Source: Paramicrosporidium saccamoebae KSL3
Lineage: Eukaryota; Fungi; Cryptomycota
Direction of reading: 5' to 3'
DNA: 11,067 nucleotides
Assembly (NCBI GenBank): GCA_002794465.1
Contig: MTSL01000077.1
Location: 17,211 to 28,277 of the forward strand
Part shown: positions 1-10,972 of the stretch, in pieces
Position numbering within the stretch: the first letter of the stretch is position 1
How the letters are laid out: each line of letters starts with the position of its first letter
Translations under genes and position numbers: made by a program
The notes under the pieces: model-generated
Databases searched by the model: none
Told to the model about the DNA's origin: nothing
What the model saw: only the letters and a program-made list of their open reading frames with translations

Positions 1-96
1 ACTGGTTCGAATTTGTCATCTACACGGGTCAGCGGTCTATAGGTCCACGTGTCCACCAGCAAAACTAGAAAAGCGGGCCAGATTTTTCAACAACCA

Positions 97-423
97 ATGA
101 ATCTGGTTATACTAGCTTTTATAGGTCTTGTGGCCAGTACAAGGGTCTATAACATACAGGGTCCCGGTAATGAACAAGTAATGGAAATCTATGTCAAGCA
201 AGACGACATTGTAAGATGCGGTGATCCACTCCTCAAGGCTCGATATGCGAAATGGTTCGGTGACGGTTGGGCATTTGGCGACGAGCGGACGATCTATGTT
301 GAATGCGTCGATAATGAAACGTATAAAGTTGCCCAAGTAAATGTTGCAGAATTGTGCATGGCCCCTGATTATCCAACTCCCATGCTGCAGCTTGACCTTC
401 AATCGGAGCCTACTTCTTTTTAG
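97..423 (+). CDS. Small hypothetical, probably secreted protein (108 aa)
   Basis: First in-frame ATG of the 49..423 ORF is at 97 and gives MNLVILAFIGLVAS, a short hydrophobic signal-peptide-like start. The mature part has 3 Cys and several Trp/Tyr. AATAAA at 434..439 follows the stop. No family recognised. Confidence 0.6.
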   Translation: MNLVILAFIGLVASTRVYNIQGPGNEQVMEIYVKQDDIVRCGDPLLKARYAKWFGDGWAFGDERTIYVECVDNETYKVAQVNVAELCMAPDYPTPMLQLDLQSEPTSF

Positions 424-468: not shown

Positions 469-926
469 ATGTCGAGATTCTCCAAACAGCAAGTGGAGAC
501 TGACGCTGCCACTCTGCAACTGGGTGACGGTAGATATTGCATGCACGTCGCTTAAATATAGAGTTCAAGGGCGCTCACTGCTTGCTTCACTCAGAGGTAC
601 TTTTATTGCTGCAGGATGTACAAGAACGACGCCGGGAAGAGGCCATGACCCTTCCGTTGCCACCACCCTCAAAAATATTCACAGAGTGCTTGGAATATGT
701 CAAAACATTTAGCCAGTACACCAACCGAGAATTGGTGCGAGCTATCCGACAAACAATGCTGAGCTCACATCTTTCAGAATTCGAGATGGGACAGATAGGC
801 AACTTGGCGCCATCCACGTCAGAAGAGGCCAAGCAATTGATTCCTAGTTTGGTTGGAAAAATTGAGGATGAAGAGCTGCAAAAGATTCTTGACGATCTAG
901 CCACTACCCGTAGATATGAAGCTTAG
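469..926 (+). CDS. RPB4: DNA-directed RNA polymerase II subunit RPB4 (spliced: exon 1 469..529, exon 2 562..926; 141 aa)
   Basis: The spliced product MSRFSKQQVETDAATLQLGDEFKGAHCLLHSEV...FSQYTNRE...HLSEFEMGQIGNLAPSTSEEAKQLIPSLVGKIEDEELQKILDDL matches recalled eukaryotic Rpb4 motifs (ExDAAxLxLGxEF, LLxSEV, FExxxLGNLxPxxxEEAxxLIPSL, DEELQxILDDL). Length fits Rpb4 of about 140 aa. The ORF track's TTG start at 537 lies inside the intron. Confidence 0.93.
530..561 (+). other. 32-nt spliceosomal intron in RPB4
   Basis: GTAGATATTGCATGCACGTCGCTTAAATATAG has GT...AG ends. Removing it joins GAC G|AG TTC and restores the conserved LGDEF motif in frame. If retained, the exon 1 frame hits TAA within the intron. 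Confidence 0.88.
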
Positions 927-938: not shown

Positions 939-985
939 ATCCGTGCGTTTGGTCTCAATAAACCATAGTCGCCAGGGTAGTAGGG

Positions 986-2674
986 ATGAAGCCGTTATTG
1001 AGAATGCATCTCTTACCCATACTTCTGTCTCTTCTCTGGCTTGTCCCGCATATCCAGGCTATCACGATAGTCGCGAACAGTCTGGAAAACATTATTCTAG
1101 ATCACACACAGGAAGATTTGTTTACAATGTTTGGTACTATCCAGGCCCACCCAGATTCGCTATCTATCCTCACCAAGTTGCTGGTTAATAAGCATGTCAA
1201 TCTGCGGAATCTTTATTGTTATTCTTGCCGCAACTGGTCATTCTCCAAATTGAGTGCTATAACTGCATGGAGTCTCAAACTAGACGACAAGATGATTAGA
1301 AACGTGTTTCTAGACAACGAGTGCATATCCAGAACGCAATTTTCAAAGCTTGCAAGGAAGAGACTGCTAGAACTAGGCATTCCCTCAGTCGTGCCCCAGG
1401 ATCTTTCAGAGCTAGAGGACCACGAATGGTCCCCAGTGCTTCAGACTGGTGACCCTAGTTATTTTGATATGTGGTGTCTGCACATCCCTGCCAAACTTCT
1501 TACTGACCAGCTTTTTCAGGCGATTGACCTTTCGTTGATTGTAACCTTGCCCTGTCTCATCTATGGCCACCCTAATAATGAGCTCATTACTGATGCGCTG
1601 ATTAAACAGATTCCGCTGGCAGCAGAAACATCCATCGTTAGATTACTCGATGTGCTCTACAACAGCACGCGCGCGTTTGATGGCTACAGGCGGATTATGG
1701 CGGAACTGCACCAAAGATATTGTCTGGGAAATGTCACATCTTCAATAGGTCAACTTTTGCGTATTCGTCTGAAATGCCAAAAATTTGACTTGCCATCATT
1801 TCACAGCCAAATGATACTCATTCTACAAAACCCACTGTGGCCTGCAAACACGGTCGCCATTCTGCTCAATATGTGGATGGCCATGGCTCCTGCCAATCTG
1901 ATCATGAAGGCCTTGAGGCTGCAGCTTGCTAATGTTTCGATCGGGTCTGCTTCGTCGAGAGACACCATTCTCCCAATCTTGAAAAGGGCATTTACCTCGA
2001 GATCCCAGTCTGAAGGACGCGCGATGCTTGAATTGGTGGGCTTGGATTATGATCAGCAGGTTCTGTTGCTTCCAGAACGTTTTTGGGTGAGCTGGGCTGA
2101 CCAGTTAAATTTGCCATTCTCTTCTAAGAAGGAATACTATCGCTCTCGGAAACTGGTTCCGCTTACATATAGTGATCTGGCTGTTTTGGGTATAGCAAGT
2201 GTGCCGCCAAGCCAATCCCAACACATACTGTTCACATTGATAGTCGCCAAAGTCAGGGCCATAATCTCCAAGAAGAGCGACTTTGGCGCCATTGATTCCA
2301 GAGTCTTCTCAACAACACCACTTATTACTCCCCACCTGGGTGCACCTTTTAATGAGTTACTCAGCCTACTGCTATACAGTTTTGTCCGTTTCGACCAGCT
2401 ACCAGCAAAGTTCAGTCGTCACTACTGTCTCGCTCTCAAAGGAGATCCTGAGCATCTTGGGCGCTACCTCAACTCTGAATTTCAGCGCCTCGGATCCACG
2501 GGACGCATTACAAATTTTTTTCCAGACCAGTATTTAAAACGACATTCAGAATTTTTGACGACAGGCCAAGCTTTACTTAATATTGTTACACGAAAGATGG
2601 CTGCACTGATGGAAAGGCGGGGGCTTGAGCACATGTTTCGTGGAATGACTCTGTGTGAGCTATTATCAGATTAA
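986..2674 (+). CDS. Secreted 8-Cys family protein, paralogue 1 (562 aa)
   Basis: Long uninterrupted ORF. N-terminus MKPLLRMHLLPILLSLLWLVPHIQA is signal-peptide-like. Has the family Cys scaffold (C-x31-C, WC-x25-CL, C-x17-C, YC...LC) plus LVGLDYD and LLYSFVRFD motifs. AATAAA at 2710..2715. Confidence 0.85.
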   Translation: MKPLLRMHLLPILLSLLWLVPHIQAITIVANSLENIILDHTQEDLFTMFGTIQAHPDSLSILTKLLVNKHVNLRNLYCYSCRNWSFSKLSAITAWSLKLDDKMIRNVFLDNECISRTQFSKLARKRLLELGIPSVVPQDLSELEDHEWSPVLQTGDPSYFDMWCLHIPAKLLTDQLFQAIDLSLIVTLPCLIYGHPNNELITDALIKQIPLAAETSIVRLLDVLYNSTRAFDGYRRIMAELHQRYCLGNVTSSIGQLLRIRLKCQKFDLPSFHSQMILILQNPLWPANTVAILLNMWMAMAPANLIMKALRLQLANVSIGSASSRDTILPILKRAFTSRSQSEGRAMLELVGLDYDQQVLLLPERFWVSWADQLNLPFSSKKEYYRSRKLVPLTYSDLAVLGIASVPPSQSQHILFTLIVAKVRAIISKKSDFGAIDSRVFSTTPLITPHLGAPFNELLSLLLYSFVRFDQLPAKFSRHYCLALKGDPEHLGRYLNSEFQRLGSTGRITNFFPDQYLKRHSEFLTTGQALLNIVTRKMAALMERRGLEHMFRGMTLCELLSD

Positions 2675-2683
2675 TCTCGCAGG

Positions 2684-2699
2684 ATATAGTGGAGTATCC
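2684..2699 (+). promoter_or_regulatory. Recurring non-coding motif ATATAGnnGAGTATCC (copy after paralogue 1)
   Basis: 14/16 identical to 4572..4587, which lies at a similar distance after the paralogue 2 stop. Confidence 0.4.
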
Positions 2700-2753
2700 C
2701 GTGCTACATAATAAAGGCTTTACTCGTGGTTTCTCTACAGCTTATATGTAGGA

Positions 2754-2914
2754 ATAACGGGAGCCGTTCTCAGATTAATAGCTGGCCATCTCATTTGAAT
2801 TCAATCTCATAAGGGAAGCCGCTTTCAGATCAATGGTTGACCGTTTCATTTAAATTCAATCTCGAACTAATGGTTGGCCATTTCATTTAAATTCAATCTC
2901 ATAATGGTCGGCCA
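2754..2914. repeat. Degenerate nested tandem repeat (55-bp duplication plus 34-bp core x3.3)
   Basis: The 34-bp core, approximately AATGGTTGGCCATTTCATTTAAATTCAATCTCAT, occurs at 2777, 2832 and 2869, with a partial copy at 2903. The flanks ATAACGGGAGCCGTTCTCAGAT (2754) and ATAAGGGAAGCCGCTTTCAGAT (2809) are 55 bp apart. Confidence 0.9.
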
Positions 2915-2940
2915 ATAAGCCAAAAGCAGCAGGTTGTTGG

Positions 2941-4557
2941 ATGCTTCACTATCACCATGTCATGATATTCTTGGCAATACTGTTCCCAATGCACGCTTCT
3001 GCATTGAAAATTCGAGGAAATTCCGAGCAACTTGTCGTGCAGTCATCCGGAGACGCGGTAACCACCCTGCTGAGAGTGTTGCCAGAATATGAACACAATT
3101 ATTATCCTCTACTTCAGCTGCTTGTTAATAATAAGGCCAATATTATGGAGCACTATGCCAAAAGTTGCAGTTCTTGGACTTATGACATTTTCAACGGGCT
3201 GGTTGACTGGTCTCTTGCTCTACCCTTTCTTTATCAATTTGTCATTCTCCATGGTCAATGCATTGATACCACCCCATTTCGTCAGTTTGCCATTGCTAAA
3301 CTAATGTCTCTGGGACTGGGAGCTGTCCTAACAAAGACAACAAACAGGCATGCAAGTGGATTTTCCACTGCAAATATGATCAAGAACTTTCCTAACTGGT
3401 GTGAAAGGTTTCCAAATCTGTTCATGACGTTCGGTCGAACGCATAGCCTTGATTTGCCATCAATAATTACCACAGAATGTCTAGTCAATGACTATCCAAA
3501 CAAGGCACTTTTGTTAAACGCATTGAATGAGCAGCTCAAGACATCCATCCATAAATCGCTGACTGAGCTTTTGTTAAAGTTGCGTGTTATCAGTCACAGA
3601 AAGCTTGTAAAATTGCGTTCTACCCTTCGCGAGCACATCTGTTCATCCAATTCTGGCACTTTTTTCCACACTATGAACATTCATCTGGTCGGCTGTCCGT
3701 GGCCAAGACAATATACGTACGATTTAAGCTTTTTCGAGGAATTTCTGTCCCTCGATAACGAGTCCTTGATCGTTGGACTACGTGCTATATTAGCAGTGTA
3801 TAACCAGGACATGGTCATAGAGATCCTTAGTGGACTGCCACCCATAAGACTCCATGGTTTCTCCAATCTACTACCCCTCTGTGAAGACCTTTCGCACATT
3901 TCTCTGGAGCATCAACGACAATTTATGATGCATCTAGGAATAGATTATGATTCGTATATGTTGCAAATGCCATACTCGTTTTGGGCAGACAGACCAGACA
4001 TGCTGAAGAAGCTGCATCTAAATTGGAGATTCCAATGGTACGCAAAATGGCATCTAAAACCTGCCATCCCGACCCCCAGTAATTTGACAGCAAAGCCCAA
4101 TCAAATACCTCCGCTGAGACACCTTGGGGGCGCTGGTATTACGGCAGACCGGATTTTGCGTTATCTCTTTAAGCTGACTTCTGAATCTGAGAATTATACC
4201 CAAACAGATCTTTGCGCCTTTCGACCGCGGGTCTGGCTTTCTCGCAAAGACTTGGAGCACTTTCTGGGAGTTTTAGTCTATGCCACCGTCAGGTTCCAAA
4301 GACTATTTGGCATTTTCGATCGTTCCTATTGTGACGCTCTCCATTCCGAAGCCTCGGTGTCACCATTGTTTTATCGGCATGATTTCACAATGCGACCGTT
4401 TCACCCGATCAGTGAATTTGCAAAGGCGGCTCAGGCAAATTTCCAAGCACAGAAGCAAGCCTTGCAGTCCATTAGCTCTAATTGGAAACTATTAACTATA
4501 GTAGAGACGGATGATATATGTCAATTGCTAGCACCTCTCCATGTGACGCAGGATTAG
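2941..4557 (+). CDS. Secreted 8-Cys family protein, paralogue 2 (538 aa)
   Basis: Long ORF. Signal-like MLHYHHVMIFLAILFPMHASA (alternative ATG at 2962). Has C-x30-C, WC-x25-CL, C-x17-C, LGIDYD, FRPRVWLS, LVYATVRFQ, FDRSYC and W-x11-C. Confidence 0.85.
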   Translation: MLHYHHVMIFLAILFPMHASALKIRGNSEQLVVQSSGDAVTTLLRVLPEYEHNYYPLLQLLVNNKANIMEHYAKSCSSWTYDIFNGLVDWSLALPFLYQFVILHGQCIDTTPFRQFAIAKLMSLGLGAVLTKTTNRHASGFSTANMIKNFPNWCERFPNLFMTFGRTHSLDLPSIITTECLVNDYPNKALLLNALNEQLKTSIHKSLTELLLKLRVISHRKLVKLRSTLREHICSSNSGTFFHTMNIHLVGCPWPRQYTYDLSFFEEFLSLDNESLIVGLRAILAVYNQDMVIEILSGLPPIRLHGFSNLLPLCEDLSHISLEHQRQFMMHLGIDYDSYMLQMPYSFWADRPDMLKKLHLNWRFQWYAKWHLKPAIPTPSNLTAKPNQIPPLRHLGGAGITADRILRYLFKLTSESENYTQTDLCAFRPRVWLSRKDLEHFLGVLVYATVRFQRLFGIFDRSYCDALHSEASVSPLFYRHDFTMRPFHPISEFAKAAQANFQAQKQALQSISSNWKLLTIVETDDICQLLAPLHVTQD

Positions 4558-4571
4558 TAAAGCGGTGAAAT

Positions 4572-4587
4572 ATATAGCCGAGTATCC
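4572..4587 (+). promoter_or_regulatory. Recurring non-coding motif ATATAGnnGAGTATCC (copy after paralogue 2)
   Basis: ATATAGCCGAGTATCC versus ATATAGTGGAGTATCC at 2684..2699. Confidence 0.4.
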
Positions 4588-4880
4588 GTCAATATTTTCC
4601 CAAGTATGAAAATGTTGACGCTCTAGCGTACCATGTTCTAGCGTGCTCTCACCGCGCACTACATAAAAGGGCCCACCAGCTGATAGTAAAGTCCCCTAGC
4701 CGCATCAACTAATAGCATTGATAAAGTCTATAATAATCACTCTGCCACACGGCATATGTATTGAACAGTGGAGTATCCATTACGAAAAATACTCGTTCAG
4801 TACCAGGCAATGGATTTACTGCGCCACTACAATACATTGACAATCTCGGCCAATCATTCCACTACTTTACGCCAGGTCTC

Positions 4881-6449
4881 ATGATCCCAGCGGTACTCTC
4901 CGCTCTTTTCTTTAGTCTTCGGAATGCGTTTGTGCTCCGTGCTGCCAATGAGGTAGAGTTTATCCAGCACAACACTACAAGCTCTCTTCAACTAGTCTTT
5001 AGTATTTTCACACTTTCCGAACAGAATATAAGGACCATGGCGAGGCTGCTGGATAATGATTATGCAAATGTGCGCGGCATATATGACAACACCTGCCAGC
5101 ATCTCCAGTTAGACGAGTTTGAACGCATTGTCGGCTACGCTTTGCAGATGAATACAAAAAGCCAACAATTACTGGCCAGTCCGCATTGCATCAATAACTT
5201 GGTGTTTGCTGAAGATGTTAGAGAGTCACTGCTGCTACGCGGAATGCCCTCGGCAATTCCCTTGAATTACTCTGAGATGGATCCCAAACACTGGCCTACC
5301 ATGATCCCATATATGATCCACTGGCATTATGCTGTCCCTTTGCGGTTTCTAACCAAAGAATTTCTTGCATCATTGGATCTGCCAAAACTAATGAGCCGGG
5401 ATTCACTTGTGAAAAATTACAACTACCGTTCAATTCTTTTCCCAGCATTGACTGATCAAGTGTCGACTGCATCGTTGCACTCTTTAACTATCCTGGTTAG
5501 TCGATTCCAGGACACTGATTTTCCTACACTGAGAAACATTATTTGTGCCAAAAACTCCGCGCACGTTCTAGAACAGGTTCACTCTCAAGTACTACGCTGT
5601 TCGCAAGAGACGTGTCTTGAGCTTGACACTCTGATGGAGGTGGCTCTCATGGAGTCACCTTTAGACGCCCGGCTAGCGCTGCTTCGAATCTGGCTGGCCA
5701 GAAGTGGTATTATCACTATCATCGATTGTCTGAGAAGGATGGATATTTCTTGCTTGGGCGCGTCGTCGCCGGCCTTGGAAGAGTTCATAACAAACCCATT
5801 ATTTATAGCACTGGAACTGGCGCAGAAGCAAACCTTATTGGCGCTAGTTGGGATCAATTACGATAGGCTTCTCCTGTCCATCTCCCCCACCATCGCTAAT
5901 GAGCCAAAGGAAAACGTACGACAGCAGTCTACACACTGGAAAATGACCTATTTTCGAAAATGGTATATGACTCTCCCGTTGAAGCAACAAACTGGACCTT
6001 TCGTGGTCCGCCGCTACATTCTTGGGCAGAAAAGAGAACAAAGACTCCAGGATCAACTGCAACTGCAGATTAGGAATCCGGACATGTTCTATACGCAGTC
6101 ACTTGTAGACGGCACAATTTTATTTCGCCCGAGGATATGGCGTTCTGCAATGTCAAGACCAGCGCTGAACCAGCTAGTCTACGTAATACTACGATTTGAC
6201 AAACCAAGAATCCTTTTGGATAAAGAGTACTGCAATTTCATACAGGGTTCAGAGACCACAGGAATATTTGAGAACGATGTCAGGTATCTACGCACCAAGG
6301 AGCACTTGATGCACAATGTTATCCCGCCCGATTCGTCGCTGGCTGCCTCAAGGGAATGCGCTGATCATTTTCGATATATTCATGTAGGATGGTCCATGCC
6401 CACAGTCATGACGGTGTCTGAATTATGCATGGCCTTGTCCAACCGATAA
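4881..6449 (+). CDS. Secreted 8-Cys family protein, paralogue 3 (522 aa; lacks Cys3 and Cys4)
   Basis: The track starts this ORF at TTG 4761. The first ATG is at 4881 and gives MIPAVLSALFFSLRNA, which aligns with the other paralogues' signal peptides. Has C-x30-C, C-x17-C, LVGINYD, FRPRIW, LVYVILRFD, LDKEYC and W-x11-C. Confidence 0.83.
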   Translation: MIPAVLSALFFSLRNAFVLRAANEVEFIQHNTTSSLQLVFSIFTLSEQNIRTMARLLDNDYANVRGIYDNTCQHLQLDEFERIVGYALQMNTKSQQLLASPHCINNLVFAEDVRESLLLRGMPSAIPLNYSEMDPKHWPTMIPYMIHWHYAVPLRFLTKEFLASLDLPKLMSRDSLVKNYNYRSILFPALTDQVSTASLHSLTILVSRFQDTDFPTLRNIICAKNSAHVLEQVHSQVLRCSQETCLELDTLMEVALMESPLDARLALLRIWLARSGIITIIDCLRRMDISCLGASSPALEEFITNPLFIALELAQKQTLLALVGINYDRLLLSISPTIANEPKENVRQQSTHWKMTYFRKWYMTLPLKQQTGPFVVRRYILGQKREQRLQDQLQLQIRNPDMFYTQSLVDGTILFRPRIWRSAMSRPALNQLVYVILRFDKPRILLDKEYCNFIQGSETTGIFENDVRYLRTKEHLMHNVIPPDSSLAASRECADHFRYIHVGWSMPTVMTVSELCMALSNR

Positions 6450-6500
6450 CGCAATGTGCACGCATTGTAACCTGTGAGGAAGCGTATACGGACCAGAATT

Positions 6501-6660
6501 AGGTGGTCCATGATGCAAATAAAGAAACCCCAATGCAAGTAAAAGATCCATAATGCGAGTAGAGGATCCATACTGCAAGTAAAGGATCCATAATGCGGGT
6601 AAAGGGTCCATAATGTGGGTGGAAGAACCATAATGCAAGTAAAAAAGCTATAATGCAGAT
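6501..6660. repeat. 20-bp minisatellite, 8 units
   Basis: Units are in perfect 20-nt register with no indels; consensus AAAGGATCCATAATGCAAGT. Confidence 0.95.
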
Positions 6661-6742
6661 GTATATATGGACCAGGACTATCCCCATCACGCAACATTGC
6701 AAACTTTATAACTCGAGAAAACAGAAATTAATTAACGGCGCT

Positions 6743-8455
6743 ATGAAGCTGAGTTTGGCGATTTGTCCGGTCGGGCTCCTCGGTCTGGTCAGACCTGCAT
6801 TAACGCTACAGGCTAATCTAAATGTCAATTCCTTTGTCACAACCATGACAGAAGGCATTATCCAGACGCTGATAGCAGTTATTCGTCTCGATAAAGCAGG
6901 ACTGGAAGGGTTGCTGCAAGTTGTAACGAACAAGGAGACCAGAGTGCTCCATCTTTATGCGCAGTCCTGCAAATACTGGAAAGCTGTTGACTTGGACAGA
7001 ATACTTGGTTGGACTCGCGAACTGACCCCAGAGAATCGGGATGTAATTCTCGATCCTAACTGTCTTGCCAACGTTGACGCTGCTTTAAACGTATACGAAA
7101 ATCTAATTGCCCATGCGATCCCCTTTAAACCATCAAGGATGTACGGAAAATTTACTACGAAAAACTGGTTGGACGTATTTTCGTACATGCCGCCTGAATA
7201 TCTCTATAAATGGTGCCACAGGATCCCACCTACACTGTTGGAGAAGGATACACTTTCCAGCATCAACCTCGCCAAATATATGAACCACGAGTGCTTAGTA
7301 CGCGATTATGGGACAAAGCCGACCCTTAGTGCCTCTCTGAACAGACAATTATTGCGTGCCCCAGCCCACGACATGTCTCGCCTACTATTAAACATGGAAA
7401 ACGTCTACTATCCAAAACTGCAAGGTTTACGCCGTCAAATAGTCCATGTAGTCTGTAAGACTAAAGGTAACTCGGTGTTTGCTCGTTTAAACGCCGAAAA
7501 ACTCTTGTGCCCTAGTCGTGTCGACCATGATTTTGGGGAAGGACTACGAATCGCACTGACTGGAAGCGACTTGGACAATGATCAGCGCATCCTCCTGGTC
7601 CGTCTGGGATTGTACGTCCTTGGAATACAGGCCTTACTTAATGAACTTCGAGGAAATTGCAACCTGGTGGCTATTGAACCAACACAGGCGCTGATTAGAT
7701 TATCATTGGATATTGTCACAATGGATGTGCGCTTGCGCCGCGAACTATTCGACATTTTTGGCATCTCCTACGACGAATATATTTTGGGCCTCCCAGAGAA
7801 CCGGTTTAGCCGTAGAAAGTTTGAACTTGTCGGATCTCCCATAACATTCCAACTTCAATATCTCAAAAGATGGAATTTCTACCCTAGGCGCTACCTGGAA
7901 AGCAACAGTGCTAGGCCATCTGTGATCCCATTGGTACACATCTCGCACCCAAATGCTGACTATGCATATGTAAAAGATGCCATCACGAGCCTAATTTCAA
8001 ACCGCGGAAAGTTTATTATTCGACGGTATCTATCGCCTGGCAACTCTCCCGTGGTCCGTCCCCGAGTGTGGCTCTCTCCTGTCAATTTTGAGAACTTGCT
8101 CAACTTAATGCTGTACAGTCTAGTCCGGTTTCAGAAGCCTGCGGCCGTGTTGGATCGTCAGTTTTGCGCCCTCCTCCAACGACCAAGAAGCATGCGGGCT
8201 GAATTTAAAGAGGATTTTTTCTATCAAAATACTCCATTGGTGGAGGAACAGGTCCGCCAGCAATTATCTGCGCGCTTCCTCCATGGCACTAGAACGCTAG
8301 ATGAATTTACTAGGCATTACCAGCAATCGATTTCGCTGCTAAATCCTTCTTTTGAGTACGTACATATGCGATGGCGTTTGGCAAGCATTACTAAAAGGTC
8401 TGAATTATGCCTCCTGCTGACCCTCCATGACTTGAATAGTCCAGTCAGCTTCTAG
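6743..8455 (+). CDS. Secreted 8-Cys family protein, paralogue 4 (570 aa)
   Basis: The track start at 6653 is an ATG inside the last unit of the 20-bp repeat. ATG 6743 gives MKLSLAICPVGLLGLVRPALT, signal-like and in register with the paralogues. Has C-x30-C, WC-x25-CL, C-x17-C, FGISYD, VRPRVWLS, MLYSLVRFQ, LDRQFC and W-x11-C. Confidence 0.85.
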   Translation: MKLSLAICPVGLLGLVRPALTLQANLNVNSFVTTMTEGIIQTLIAVIRLDKAGLEGLLQVVTNKETRVLHLYAQSCKYWKAVDLDRILGWTRELTPENRDVILDPNCLANVDAALNVYENLIAHAIPFKPSRMYGKFTTKNWLDVFSYMPPEYLYKWCHRIPPTLLEKDTLSSINLAKYMNHECLVRDYGTKPTLSASLNRQLLRAPAHDMSRLLLNMENVYYPKLQGLRRQIVHVVCKTKGNSVFARLNAEKLLCPSRVDHDFGEGLRIALTGSDLDNDQRILLVRLGLYVLGIQALLNELRGNCNLVAIEPTQALIRLSLDIVTMDVRLRRELFDIFGISYDEYILGLPENRFSRRKFELVGSPITFQLQYLKRWNFYPRRYLESNSARPSVIPLVHISHPNADYAYVKDAITSLISNRGKFIIRRYLSPGNSPVVRPRVWLSPVNFENLLNLMLYSLVRFQKPAAVLDRQFCALLQRPRSMRAEFKEDFFYQNTPLVEEQVRQQLSARFLHGTRTLDEFTRHYQQSISLLNPSFEYVHMRWRLASITKRSELCLLLTLHDLNSPVSF

Positions 8456-9054
8456 ACACAACGTAGAAATACACGTTTTCCGTAACTAACTGAGATTGTG
8501 ATCCATAGTTTCGTTATTCGATAAAACAATGCTGCTGGACAGTATCCGCTTATAATTGGTGGCCCCGGCACAGATCTTTATGCTATCTTGCAATCCGATG
8601 TGTTGTATTGAGGATGGTGGTCTATAAACCACATACTTTAATAGAATTGTGTTATGTGGTGAATTGATTCGCGTTCAAAGAATGAGGACTCTTTATTTAG
8701 AACATTATCAGATGAAACAACTTGGCTTATAAGAACATACCATCCCACAAGAACAGCTCTTAAAGTGGGCGATAGTAGCTCTTATAAGTGTCCCACTGTC
8801 ACACCAGGGCCGTGGATATAAATTTCACAATGAGATATTCTCCCGTACTAATTCTTAAATTTACCTCCCCCCCCTCCCCATAATGGCATCCTAATCGGGA
8901 ACCGGCATCTGATGCACAAAAATCAAATTTACCGGGTTGGGCGGCGACGAGTGACTCATATCCATAGTAATATTCAACCTCATAGTCGCCCCAAATGCTC
9001 GTGATTTACCAGCATAGGCACCGACTACCAGCGGGCCATCCATTATCCATCGGA

Positions 9055-10896
9055 ATGCTCGTGGTTATTACTTTGCTGAGTGTCGTCGCTCATTGTGTCT
9101 ACGGCCTGGTCGGGCGGACTACTATGAGGAATCTTTCGGAAAACCACACTGGTCGCGCCGTGCAAACGGTCATCTCGAGTCTCGCTCGCGATTCCGACGG
9201 CTTTCCGTCGCTCGTTCGAATCCTGACAAATGCTCATTTTCTTGTCGGTTCGTTGTATACGGATACGTGTGCCACATGGTCTATAAATGATTTCGAGAGC
9301 GCAGTAAAGTATAGCAACACGCTGCATCCGCTACAGCGGGATAGGGTATTGCAGCGCGACTGCTTAAATAAGCTGCCGTTTCAGAAAGAGGCATACCAGA
9401 TCCTGCGAGATTCCAAGATCCCGACAAATCTACCCGAATTCATGAAAAGTCTTTTGGACCCGACCGAATGGCTAAAGGTGTTTTCTATCAGGTCGCCAGA
9501 GTACATCTCGAACTGGTGCCTGCTGATTCCCAAGGTGTTGCTCACTGCCGAGTTCTTGTCGAAAGTCAATTTGCCGTATTACATGAGCCCTAAGTGTCTC
9601 AATCAATCCTACGCAAACAAGAACCTTCTTGTGAATGCGCTGACGGAACAAATTGGTACTCGAAATCATTGGTCCTTGCTCAAATTGCTCAATACTCTCC
9701 GGTTTATTAACAGCAAACTTGCCACAGGTGTCAGGACAAAGCTCAAGCAGCGAATATGCGACAATGGGAGCAAGAAAATGTTCCACTTGATGAATGCAAC
9801 ATTCCTCCGGTGCAGCTGGGTCCGTTCGACTCGTCCCGAAGAAGTTTTGGATCTCATGCGGAAAAAGGTGCTCGACGGTGAGACCTTGGTGATGGCAATG
9901 AGAATGTGGATTAAACGTCTCAAAGTGGTGAATACCGTTTCAATGTTGGGTAAGAAGCACCACCAATGGCAGGTTCCCTATTCTCATGATAGCATCGTCC
10001 TGTTACAAGAATTAAGTGATGAAACGATTTTTCGACAGAAAACGTTCTTTGATTTCCTCGATTTAAATATTGAATATGTGGCCTACCATGCGCCGTTTAG
10101 TATTTGGAAAAATCGTAGTGAAGGACAGCTGAGTATATATTCCATGCCGTTGCGGTGGAGACTTTTGTACTATCGGGGATGGCAGATGCTCCCACGAGAG
10201 CGCCGGGCTCCTCGACAATGTCACGAATTTAAGCCATTCCACTACTGGAGTAAGCACAGTTTTGATGAAGCGAAACGCCGAATAGACAAATATTTAGCGG
10301 AGAGGAAATACTTCAACATGCAGTCTGGTTTAGTATTTCCAGTTCCATCAGTCCCTGAGCGCGTCTTGGAATTTGTTATTGGGGTTATGATTGCAAGCAT
10401 TATACAAAAGGGGGTAGACATGCTTCGCTTTGATCCCACTTATTGTGTCTCTCTTAGAACACAGGACATGCTGAGATTTTCGCAATCTAGCCTTCCCAGC
10501 TCAAATGGTTCTATGAGCGATTCTTCATCAGCCGAAGAGGACGGACTAAGATTTTCACAGTCCAGTCGAGGAGACTTGACTACCTCTATGAGTAATTTAT
10601 CACTGTCCAGGGGGGATGCGCTGAGATCCTCGCAGTCCAGTCGGGAAGACTTGTACGCTTCCATGAGCAATTTGTCACTAGCCGAGGATCTTCAAGAGTT
10701 GGAACTGTGTATGGAAGCACATCGTAAAGTCTTTTCAAAAGTCTACAAAGATTGGAAGCTTTCAGCGATGGTGGAAGAATCCAAGTTTTGCGAATTCTTG
10801 TCGACTGATATTGCCAGAGAAGTTTTAAAGTCGGCCATAGTTCATAATGATCCACGAACCCAACTTTACGAAGAGTACGGCTGTTCAACCCAGTGA
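9055..10896 (+). CDS. Secreted 8-Cys family protein, paralogue 5 (613 aa; start could be 8995) with Ser-rich repeat insertion
   Basis: Long ORF. ATG 9055 gives MLVVITLLSVVAHCVYG, signal-like; ATG 8995 adds 20 residues. Has C-x30-C, WC-x25-CL, C-x17-C, FDPTYC and W-x11-C. By hand alignment it shares 32 of 75 residues with paralogue 2 in the Cys4-Cys6 segment. Confidence 0.85.
   Translation: MLVVITLLSVVAHCVYGLVGRTTMRNLSENHTGRAVQTVISSLARDSDGFPSLVRILTNAHFLVGSLYTDTCATWSINDFESAVKYSNTLHPLQRDRVLQRDCLNKLPFQKEAYQILRDSKIPTNLPEFMKSLLDPTEWLKVFSIRSPEYISNWCLLIPKVLLTAEFLSKVNLPYYMSPKCLNQSYANKNLLVNALTEQIGTRNHWSLLKLLNTLRFINSKLATGVRTKLKQRICDNGSKKMFHLMNATFLRCSWVRSTRPEEVLDLMRKKVLDGETLVMAMRMWIKRLKVVNTVSMLGKKHHQWQVPYSHDSIVLLQELSDETIFRQKTFFDFLDLNIEYVAYHAPFSIWKNRSEGQLSIYSMPLRWRLLYYRGWQMLPRERRAPRQCHEFKPFHYWSKHSFDEAKRRIDKYLAERKYFNMQSGLVFPVPSVPERVLEFVIGVMIASIIQKGVDMLRFDPTYCVSLRTQDMLRFSQSSLPSSNGSMSDSSSAEEDGLRFSQSSRGDLTTSMSNLSLSRGDALRSSQSSREDLYASMSNLSLAEDLQELELCMEAHRKVFSKVYKDWKLSAMVEESKFCEFLSTDIAREVLKSAIVHNDPRTQLYEEYGCSTQ
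10465..10689 (+). repeat. Coding tandem repeat, 3 x 75 nt (25 aa), inside paralogue 5
   Basis: DMLRFSQSSLPSSNGSMSDSSSAEE / DGLRFSQSSRGDLTTSMSNLSLSRG / DALRSSQSSREDLYASMSNLSLAED, starting at 10465, 10540 and 10615. Confidence 0.92.
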
Positions 10897-10916: not shown

Positions 10917-10972
10917 GTAAGATAGCAATATAGTAAGATAATAAGACAGTAAGATAGTAAGATGGTAATGTG
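10917..10972. repeat. 8-bp tandem repeat (GTAAGATA) x7, degenerate
   Basis: GTAAGATA GCAATATA GTAAGATA ATAAGACA GTAAGATA GTAAGATG GTAATGTG, in exact 8-nt register downstream of the paralogue 5 stop. Confidence 0.85.

Follow-up and report, generated by a model that had tools for sequence, protein, structure and literature searches.

Clade-specific large gene families of Microsporidia were reportedly set out by Reinke et al. in 2017. Disulfide-braced helical proteins make up several surface and invasion families, such as the trypanosome VSG, the Plasmodium DBL domains and RH5. The polar tubes of Microsporidia dissolve only with reducing agents, the polar tube protein (PTP) PTP2 carries eight conserved cysteines, and PTP genes are kept as syntenic tandem pairs despite the divergence of their sequences. 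In Microsporidia, clade-specific secreted paralogue families without structural matches constitute a recognised host-interface class (PMC10393165). Paramicrosporidium saccamoebae, a member of the Rozellomycota, parasitises the nucleus of Saccamoeba, in which it grows as a naked protoplast, and forms microsporidia-like spores (PMC5701793). Its spores possess a polar filament, yet no protein of its proteome was matched by hidden Markov models (HMMs) of the polar-filament proteins of Microsporidia (PMC5701793). Here we describe an orphan family of putatively secreted, helical, eight-cysteine proteins encoded in tandem within an 11,067-nucleotide stretch of P. saccamoebae contig MTSL01000077.1 (assembly GCA_002794465.1). 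This stretch, hereafter the window, corresponds to positions 8998-20064 of locus L001, which itself comprises bases 8214-29884 of the contig. The first-pass annotation of the window had supposed a compact-genome parasite, and P. saccamoebae is indeed an intracellular parasite with a compact genome. The genome paper is silent on secreted proteins and effectors as well as on gene families and tandem arrays (PMC5701793), and literature searches on the Paramicrosporidium secretome and signal peptides returned nothing on this family, whose genes are deposited only as hypothetical proteins.

Exactly five open reading frames (ORFs) of at least 150 residues are present in the window, all single-exon and on the + strand, and no further ORF of this size was found on either strand. 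The five family members are:

986..2674, + strand: w1, family member 1; ORF of 562 residues with all eight scaffold cysteines
2941..4557, + strand: w2, family member 2; ORF of 538 residues
4881..6449, + strand: w3, family member 3; 522 residues from ATG 4881, in an ORF open from TTG 4761 (4761-6449, 562 residues)
6743..8455, + strand: w4, family member 4; 570 residues from ATG 6743 (P0002), in an ORF open from ATG 6653 (6653-8455, 600 residues)
8995..10896, + strand: w5, family member 5; 633 residues (P0003), with a signal-like segment from M21 (nucleotide 9055)

The first-pass annotation had proposed that five co-oriented, intronless ORFs form a tandem family, and the five genes at these coordinates are homologous in every comparison. 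All ten pairwise BLASTP alignments reach significance, scoring 85-135 bits at 20-25% identity and in most cases spanning more than 350 residues, and the five proteins align over their full length, displaying 20-22% identity to the first sequence and 21 invariant columns, six of which are cysteines. Motif spacings were checked by regular expression on the five proteins. Y-x-x-[ST]-C-x30/31-C and C-x17-C are present in all five; WC-x25-CL is present in four, with w3 lacking both cysteines of pair 2 (WC replaced by WH and CL by SL); and D-x-x-[YF]-C, W-x11-C and G[IL]xYD are each present in four. The shared cysteine spacings thus stood, whereas L-x-Y-x-x-[VL]RF, listed as common to the set, was recovered in three of the five, and the aromatic block did not hold as originally written: its Y-x2-W form is confined to w2 and w5, and the family-wide block reads M-P-x-x-W-R-L-x-Y-Y-R-x-W-x-x-x-P. 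Leucine accounts for 12.6-17.1% of the residues, in agreement with the Leu-rich composition initially reported.

Signal peptides were called from hydropathy and inspection, the criterion being a Kyte-Doolittle 10-residue window of ≥2.0 in the first 40 residues, while transmembrane segments were sought with a 19-residue window and a cut-off of 1.6. The hydrophobic N-termini first described, which resemble signal peptides, were observed in all five proteins (maximum 10-residue mean of 2.3-3.1) and, by the ≥2.0 window, in about 20 of the 22 full-length members of the family, which represent independent gene calls from at least six organisms. Among neighbouring genes, 3 of 26 reached 2.0, one of them encoding a membrane transporter. 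The typical N-terminus displays a hydrophobic core of 12-18 residues, a small-x-small site and then L-x-[ILV], as exemplified by MKTFMLFLLLLWTSVYG|LTV, MSSRWPVLLFALLAVLSTILVDA|LHV and MLVVITLLSVVAHCVYG|LVG. No convincing internal transmembrane segment was identified in the five proteins, w1 alone presenting one 19-residue window at 1.68 (residue 176), and the C-termini of family members are variable, with no KDEL/HDEL and no hydrophobic or glycosylphosphatidylinositol (GPI)-like tail. The putative mature proteins have masses of 56-69 kDa and isoelectric points of 6.5-9.4. Secretion of family members is thereby well supported as a prediction from sequence.

The start codons bear directly on these N-termini. 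The NCBI model of w1 (P0001, 556 residues) starts at ATG 1004, and the w1 N-terminus is signal-like (MHLLPILLSLLWLVPHIQA). The deposited model of w2 (P0004, 522 residues) begins at M17, the second in-frame ATG, and loses the hydrophobic N-terminus, while the ORF from ATG 2941 brings it back (MLHYHHVMIFLAILFPMHASA; start region 2941-2988). Since P0004 drops a segment found in every other member, its start is likely a start-codon mis-annotation. For w3 and w4 the true starts are likely the internal ATGs 4881 and 6743 rather than the first start codon of each ORF. These deposited starts place the hydrophobic stretch at the extreme N-terminus, and the first ATG of the w4 ORF (6653) falls within an intergenic tandem repeat of 20-nucleotide units.

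The rigid cysteine scaffold had been interpreted as a disulfide frame, and the pattern in which cysteines are lost argues strongly for this interpretation. In the 31-sequence family alignment (A2), the eight scaffold columns hold cysteine in 76-93% of cases (24-30 family sequences). C3 and C4 are both lost in w3, P0024 and P0027; C5 and C6 in P0014, P0016, P0017, P0019 and P0022; C7 and C8 in P0016 and P0019; and C1 and C2 in P0027. Among the 22 full-length members, 11 losses are joint and 5 single, compared with a mean of 2.65 joint losses under column permutation, and 0 of 20,000 permutations reach 11, although the sequences are related and the events are therefore not fully independent. The pairing 1-2, 3-4, 5-6, 7-8 is the best of the 105 possible pairings. 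The spacings between cysteines, 17-81 residues, are unlike those of CxxC/CxxH metal sites. At the sequence level there is thus good support for four sequential disulfides among the eight cysteines, C1-C2, C3-C4, C5-C6 and C7-C8. Loss in pairs points to oxidised cysteines and hence to passage through the secretory pathway, for which it provides good sequence-level evidence.

The structures of w4, the most central member of the family profile, and of w2 were predicted by AlphaFold2 using the family alignment. The w4 model has a mean predicted local distance difference test score (pLDDT) of 86.5 and a predicted template modelling score (pTM) of 0.85, a pLDDT of ≥90 being reached by 350 of its 570 residues; the w2 model has a mean pLDDT of 86.7 and a pTM of 0.84. 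Their secondary-structure strings are nearly superimposable, each comprising about 35 mostly short helices, and both models contain a small β-hairpin around a conserved R-P-R-V-W motif. In the models the signal segment appears as a detached helix of low confidence. A compact, all-α body of about 500 residues with one small β-hairpin is therefore strongly supported by modelling, in line with the helical proteins first anticipated.

No known fold or domain was recovered. A Foldseek search of 350,542 PDB chains returned no match at E ≤ 1e-3 for either model. The best PDB matches, which are non-significant (E of 0.013 and 0.051, TM-score ≤0.28, root mean square deviation of 14-30 Å), are generic α-solenoids, and membership of the HEAT/ARM/PUF α-solenoids was rejected on these values and on the lack of any Pfam repeat family match. 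Against BFVD, which includes giant viruses of amoebae, one model gave no match at E ≤ 1e-3, and a giant-virus or other viral origin was set aside on this structural result (best E = 0.019, TM-score of 0.16). Searches of PDB sequences with the 5- and 31-sequence profiles gave nothing below E = 0.7. In Pfam, neither the 31 members nor the family consensus produced an above-threshold match, sub-threshold noise being all that was seen; this covers CFEM (PF05730) and other Cys-rich secreted domains, and no PTP or spore-wall Pfam family was matched at E ≤ 1. Residues 17-128 of P0010 align with PF17007 HTH_micro at 19.7 bits (E = 4.2e-4), below the gathering threshold of 27.3 bits, while the other 30 members and the consensus lack this match; membership is treated as unsupported. 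HTH_micro, on which no literature was found, is not known outside Microsporidia. The fold may thus not be represented in the PDB. Both the absence of a recognised domain and the absence of a confident match to a characterised housekeeping family were upheld, the latter in Pfam, PDB and profile searches alike. The non-cysteine residues conserved family-wide form aromatic, Arg and Pro motifs (W-C-x-x-I-P, M-P-x-x-W-R-L-x-Y-Y-R and R-P-R), with no conserved His/Asp/Glu/Ser constellation among them.

The family had initially been counted as five genes, a number that proved too low, as two further copies lie on the same contig:

directly after w5: dn6 (P0013), the sixth copy, 516 residues
~6.4 kb upstream, beyond Rpb4, an aldehyde dehydrogenase gene and a coiled-coil gene: up0 (PSACC_01071, P0015), the seventh copy, 508 residues, 'hypothetical protein'

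Scanning 38.7 kb of the contig with the family HMM brought up no further copy. When the five-sequence profile was run exhaustively with HMMER against 1.84 billion representative proteins, 28 were retrieved at E ≤ 1e-3, 19 of them at E ≤ 1e-30. Seven are the P. saccamoebae genes, no additional copy from this organism being returned, and the others, either unnamed or labelled 'hypothetical', originate in Logan SRA assemblies and JGI/ENA metagenomes. No homolog from other fungi, Rozella, Mitosporidium or Microsporidia was found among these 1.84 billion representatives. All members with an examined contig reside either in P. saccamoebae itself or on a syntenic contig of Paramicrosporidium-like character. 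A word-indexed protein search with the 5- and 31-sequence profiles found only the query's own protein, a result that is uninformative at 20-25% identity, and a metagenome DNA scan with the w5 subgroup (A3) yielded no confirmed relative. The gene order around family members is:

P. saccamoebae (MTSL01000077.1): Rpb4 - [6 family genes] - ELP1 - RNase PH - UQ_con - EB1, plus up0
organism B (L002-L004; JGI 3300036987, SRR11844784, SRR12926096): GlnRS - coiled-coil - Aldedh - Rpb4 - [3 family genes] - ELP1 - RNase PH - UQ_con
organism C (L007; SRR21707646): Aldedh - Rpb4 - [1 family gene] - ELP1 - RNase PH - UQ_con - EB1
organism C, dispersed copies (L008, L009): two more single copies elsewhere
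organism D (L010; DRR438482): Rpb4 - [at least 2 family genes], on a short contig
organism E (L011): at least 2 family genes in tandem, flanks not seen
organism F (L013; SRR27341044): [2 family genes with two small genes between] - ELP1 - RNase PH - UQ_con

The array thus holds a fixed address, Rpb4-[family]-ELP1, among housekeeping genes, with 1, 2, 3 or 6 copies in the slot depending on the relative; at least four uncultured relatives carry 1-3 copies. It does not lie in a plastic genome region. On the syntenic contig of the closest multi-copy relative, a MULE/SWIM transposase gene occupies L002 1661-2836, upstream of GlnRS; the examined part of the P. saccamoebae contig has no such gene.

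The P. saccamoebae paralogues are mutually 20-27% identical and have closer counterparts in the relatives: w1 is 57% identical to P0032, w2 63% to P0020, w5 59-70% to P0012 and 39% to P0006, and dn6 58-60% to P0021/L014. As counterparts at 57-70% are much closer than the paralogues are to each other, these identities indicate that the duplications predate the split from the relatives and that the paralogues are long-lived lineages rather than a recent burst. Of the local amplification and extreme divergence originally proposed, the tandem copies and the 20-27% identity therefore stand, and the recent, rapid burst does not. A neighbour-joining tree had bootstraps of ≤17% at all deep nodes and an artefactual grouping of fragments, and statements of orthology here refer to best-hit identities only. 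Between P. saccamoebae and organism B, identities are 94% for UQ_con, 86% for Aldedh, 74% for Rpb4, 60% for RNase PH, 47% for ELP1 and 23-26% for the best family pairs. By this measure the family is the fastest-diverging gene of the block, a divergence that need not reflect positive selection. The only same-species contigs (L002, L003 and L004) carry identical family genes; the next relatives share 57-70% protein identity, at which synonymous sites are saturated. On L014, the dn6 ortholog is 60% identical and the adjacent ELP1 N-terminus 66%.

Other features of the window are:

469..926, + strand: Rpb4 (RNA polymerase II subunit; PF03874, E = 5e-25), not a family member
964..973, + strand: exact 10-mer CATAGTCGCC, 13 nucleotides ahead of the w1 ATG
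2754..2914, no strand: intergenic tandem repeat of 55- and 37-nucleotide units, upstream of w2
6500..6659, no strand: intergenic tandem repeat of the 20-nucleotide unit TCCATAATGCAAGTAAAGGA, ~7 copies, upstream of w4
8981..8990, + strand: second exact copy of the 10-mer CATAGTCGCC, 5 nucleotides ahead of the w5 ATG
10471..10695, + strand: Ser-rich 25-residue unit repeated three times within w5 (residues 493-567), with LR[FS]SQSS at residues 493, 518 and 543

Rpb4 is the left border of the array and is kept in all relatives. Exact CATAGTCGCC has only these two intergenic occurrences in the 38.7 kb examined and is a candidate shared cis element of w1 and w5. A looser + strand pattern, C[AG]TA[AG]T[CG]G (the upstream motif is also written CATAGTCGCC/CATAATGG), is present upstream of up0, w1, w2, w5 and dn6 and of no housekeeping neighbour, an enrichment that is only suggestive as the pattern was derived post hoc. 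The intergenic tandem repeats may be repeated promoter elements. An 8-nucleotide GTAAGATA repeat occupies 10917-10968, downstream of w5, and an unrelated 26-nucleotide tandem repeat is located at ~2590-2740 of L010, upstream of that relative's second array gene.

The w5 repeat is 28% Ser and lies in the loop between Cys7 and the C-terminal helix. Two of its three units (residues 513-562, nucleotides 10531-10680) are missing from the 70%-identical ortholog P0012, which has one unit, and this comparison points to a recent in-frame expansion. An unannotated ORF of 124 residues at 49-423 (+ strand), between the assembly gap and Rpb4, has a GTG start and an internal Met followed by a hydrophobic stretch; as it has no Pfam match and no counterpart at any related locus, it is probably not a gene. 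The G+C content across the window is 41-49%, and no tRNA gene or Rfam family was found in it. Runs of N (scaffold gaps) border the window on both sides (L001 8826-8997 and 20065-20252), so that the spacing to flanking genes, and possibly the copy number at the edges, are assembly-dependent.

The explanation that we favour, with moderate confidence, is that the family comprises secreted, oxidised, soluble binding proteins, the diversified paralogues of which operate at the parasite-host interface. The proteins would enter the parasite endoplasmic reticulum (ER), become oxidised there and leave the cell as soluble proteins of 56-69 kDa. They might act through binding and not catalysis, a weaker step of the proposal, favoured because the conserved non-cysteine positions are aromatic, Arg and Pro motifs and not a catalytic-looking set. 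The paralogues would have diversified into distinct long-lived lineages working at the interface with the host. During growth this interface would be the host nucleoplasm, the parasite being wall-less and intranuclear, and a classically secreted protein would therefore reach it; an effector role is something we only infer. Several considerations weigh against such a function. A reducing compartment such as the host nucleus would be an uncommon destination for disulfide-rich proteins, and four disulfides suit an extracellular spore structure at least as well. The conserved slot among housekeeping genes and the single copy in a distant relative are also compatible with a conserved cell-biological role. 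The signal-peptide call was itself made from hydropathy and inspection. The dn6 ortholog (60%) appears to have diverged about as much as the ELP1 N-terminus (66%), for which reason arms-race-type evolution is not demonstrated.

The strongest competitor, possible but clearly less probable, assigns the proteins to the spore or invasion apparatus (polar filament, anchoring disc or spore wall) as disulfide-cross-linked or disulfide-stabilised structural proteins, with the paralogues as non-redundant subunits. P. saccamoebae builds a polar filament without recognised proteins, and since microsporidian HMMs found no match (PMC5701793), the components of the filament must be unrecognised, fast-evolving secreted proteins. 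A signal peptide and conserved disulfides suit an extracellular, environmentally exposed structure, each ancient paralogue has been kept with its own ortholog, and the family is present at a fixed locus in every relative seen. Microsporidian PTPs are likewise secreted, cysteine-bearing, fast-evolving and syntenically paired. However, the 56-69 kDa, compact, globular all-α proteins modelled here (pTM 0.85) differ from PTPs, which are small or of low complexity and rich in Pro, Gly or Lys, no Pfam PTP or spore-wall family is matched, and a slot copy number varying from 1 to 6 between relatives is odd for a structure of fixed stoichiometry. A more specific version, in which the Paramicrosporidium polar filament or spore invasion apparatus is built from the products of the array as disulfide-locked helical subunits with a fold not in the PDB, is unlikely. 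If true, it would for the first time open molecular access to the polar filament beyond the canonical Microsporidia and allow a direct test of whether this structure has a single origin.

It is similarly doubtful that the family resides in the parasite's own secretory or endolysosomal lumen or on its cell surface, as a chaperone, a cargo receptor or a factor in lipid/sterol handling, fulfilling a lineage-specific housekeeping role with no direct host target. The family sits within the conserved housekeeping block between Rpb4 and ELP1 in all relatives whose flanks were seen, organism C has a single copy in the slot, ortholog divergence is similar to that of ELP1, and the predicted fold, ordered and compact, has a conserved aromatic/Arg motif that might provide a ligand pocket. 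These features are countered by the lack of an ER-retention signal, transmembrane anchor or GPI-like tail and by the absence of homologs in other fungi, Rozella, Mitosporidium and Microsporidia among the 1.84 billion representatives searched, which is unexpected for core secretory machinery; moreover, in a genome whose history is otherwise one of gene loss, seven diverged paralogues point to a diversifying role. That the family is not secreted, its N-terminal stretch being a membrane anchor or start-codon artefact and its cysteines metal-binding or structural in the cytosol, is highly improbable: the start codons of w2, w3, w4 and w5 are uncertain and the NCBI model of w2 has no hydrophobic segment, but such a segment recurs in about 20 of the 22 full-length members, whose genes were called independently in at least six organisms, the 17-81-residue spacings and paired losses are disulfide-like and not of the CxxC/CxxH type, and AlphaFold2 leaves the N-terminal segment detached from the fold.

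The Rozellomycota link Fungi to Microsporidia, and in Paramicrosporidium no secreted effector, spore-wall or polar-filament protein has been identified so far. The family is thus a concrete start for asking how an intranuclear parasite of amoebae addresses its host or builds its invasion apparatus, and its conserved genomic address makes orthologs easy to find in metagenomes. Its practical importance is limited, as the hosts are amoebae and the function is inferred.

Comparison with known systems places the family in a described class while setting it apart from each example. The HEAT/ARM/PUF α-solenoids provided the best, non-significant Foldseek matches, from which the local packing of the models would be helical-hairpin-like, although the P. 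saccamoebae proteins show no sequence repeat periodicity and are predicted to be extracytoplasmic with disulfides. The resemblance to VSG, DBL and RH5 is one of analogy only: these are secreted or surface α-helical bodies that keep conserved disulfides while the rest diverges among many paralogues, whereas the present family, from an unrelated organism, has a low copy number, no membrane anchor and no Foldseek similarity to PDB entries for the two models. The polar tube proteins PTP1-PTP6, and PTP2 in particular, share a signal peptide (here putative) and conserved cysteines (eight in PTP2), diverge rapidly with conserved gene order and tandem pairing, and are parts of an organelle also present in P. 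saccamoebae; they are, however, smaller or of low complexity (Pro-, Gly- or Lys-rich), while the P. saccamoebae proteins are compact, helical and of 55-70 kDa.

The large gene families of Microsporidia (among them NemLGF1, NemLGF2 and InterB/DUF1609; PMC10393165) are similar in being paralogues of one clade whose copy number differs between related species, in having a signal peptide (here a signal-like segment judged by hydropathy) in most members and a presumed host-interface role, and in lacking detectable domains and structural matches for their AlphaFold models. In the terms used for those families (PMC10393165), the 28 matches are restricted to one clade, all examined contigs being Paramicrosporidium-like, and about 20 of 22 full-length members, by hydropathy alone, are signal-like, compared with a threshold of more than 50% of members with a signal peptide or transmembrane segment. 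In contrast, a microsporidian 'large gene family' has at least 10 paralogues per genome (PMC10393165) and up to ~240, and with only 7 copies in P. saccamoebae the present family was not assigned to that category. It also forms one ancient tandem array in a housekeeping slot, unlike the many dispersed, lineage-specific expansions of the Microsporidia families, and differs from them in its fixed four-disulfide scaffold and in a host that offers an amoeba nucleus rather than an animal cell, with no sequence relationship detected. We regard these proteins as a new orphan family that may have a new fold and that falls within the known class of clade-specific secreted parasite protein families. It is unusual in the rigidity of its four-disulfide frame, the age of its paralogues and its conserved address among housekeeping genes.

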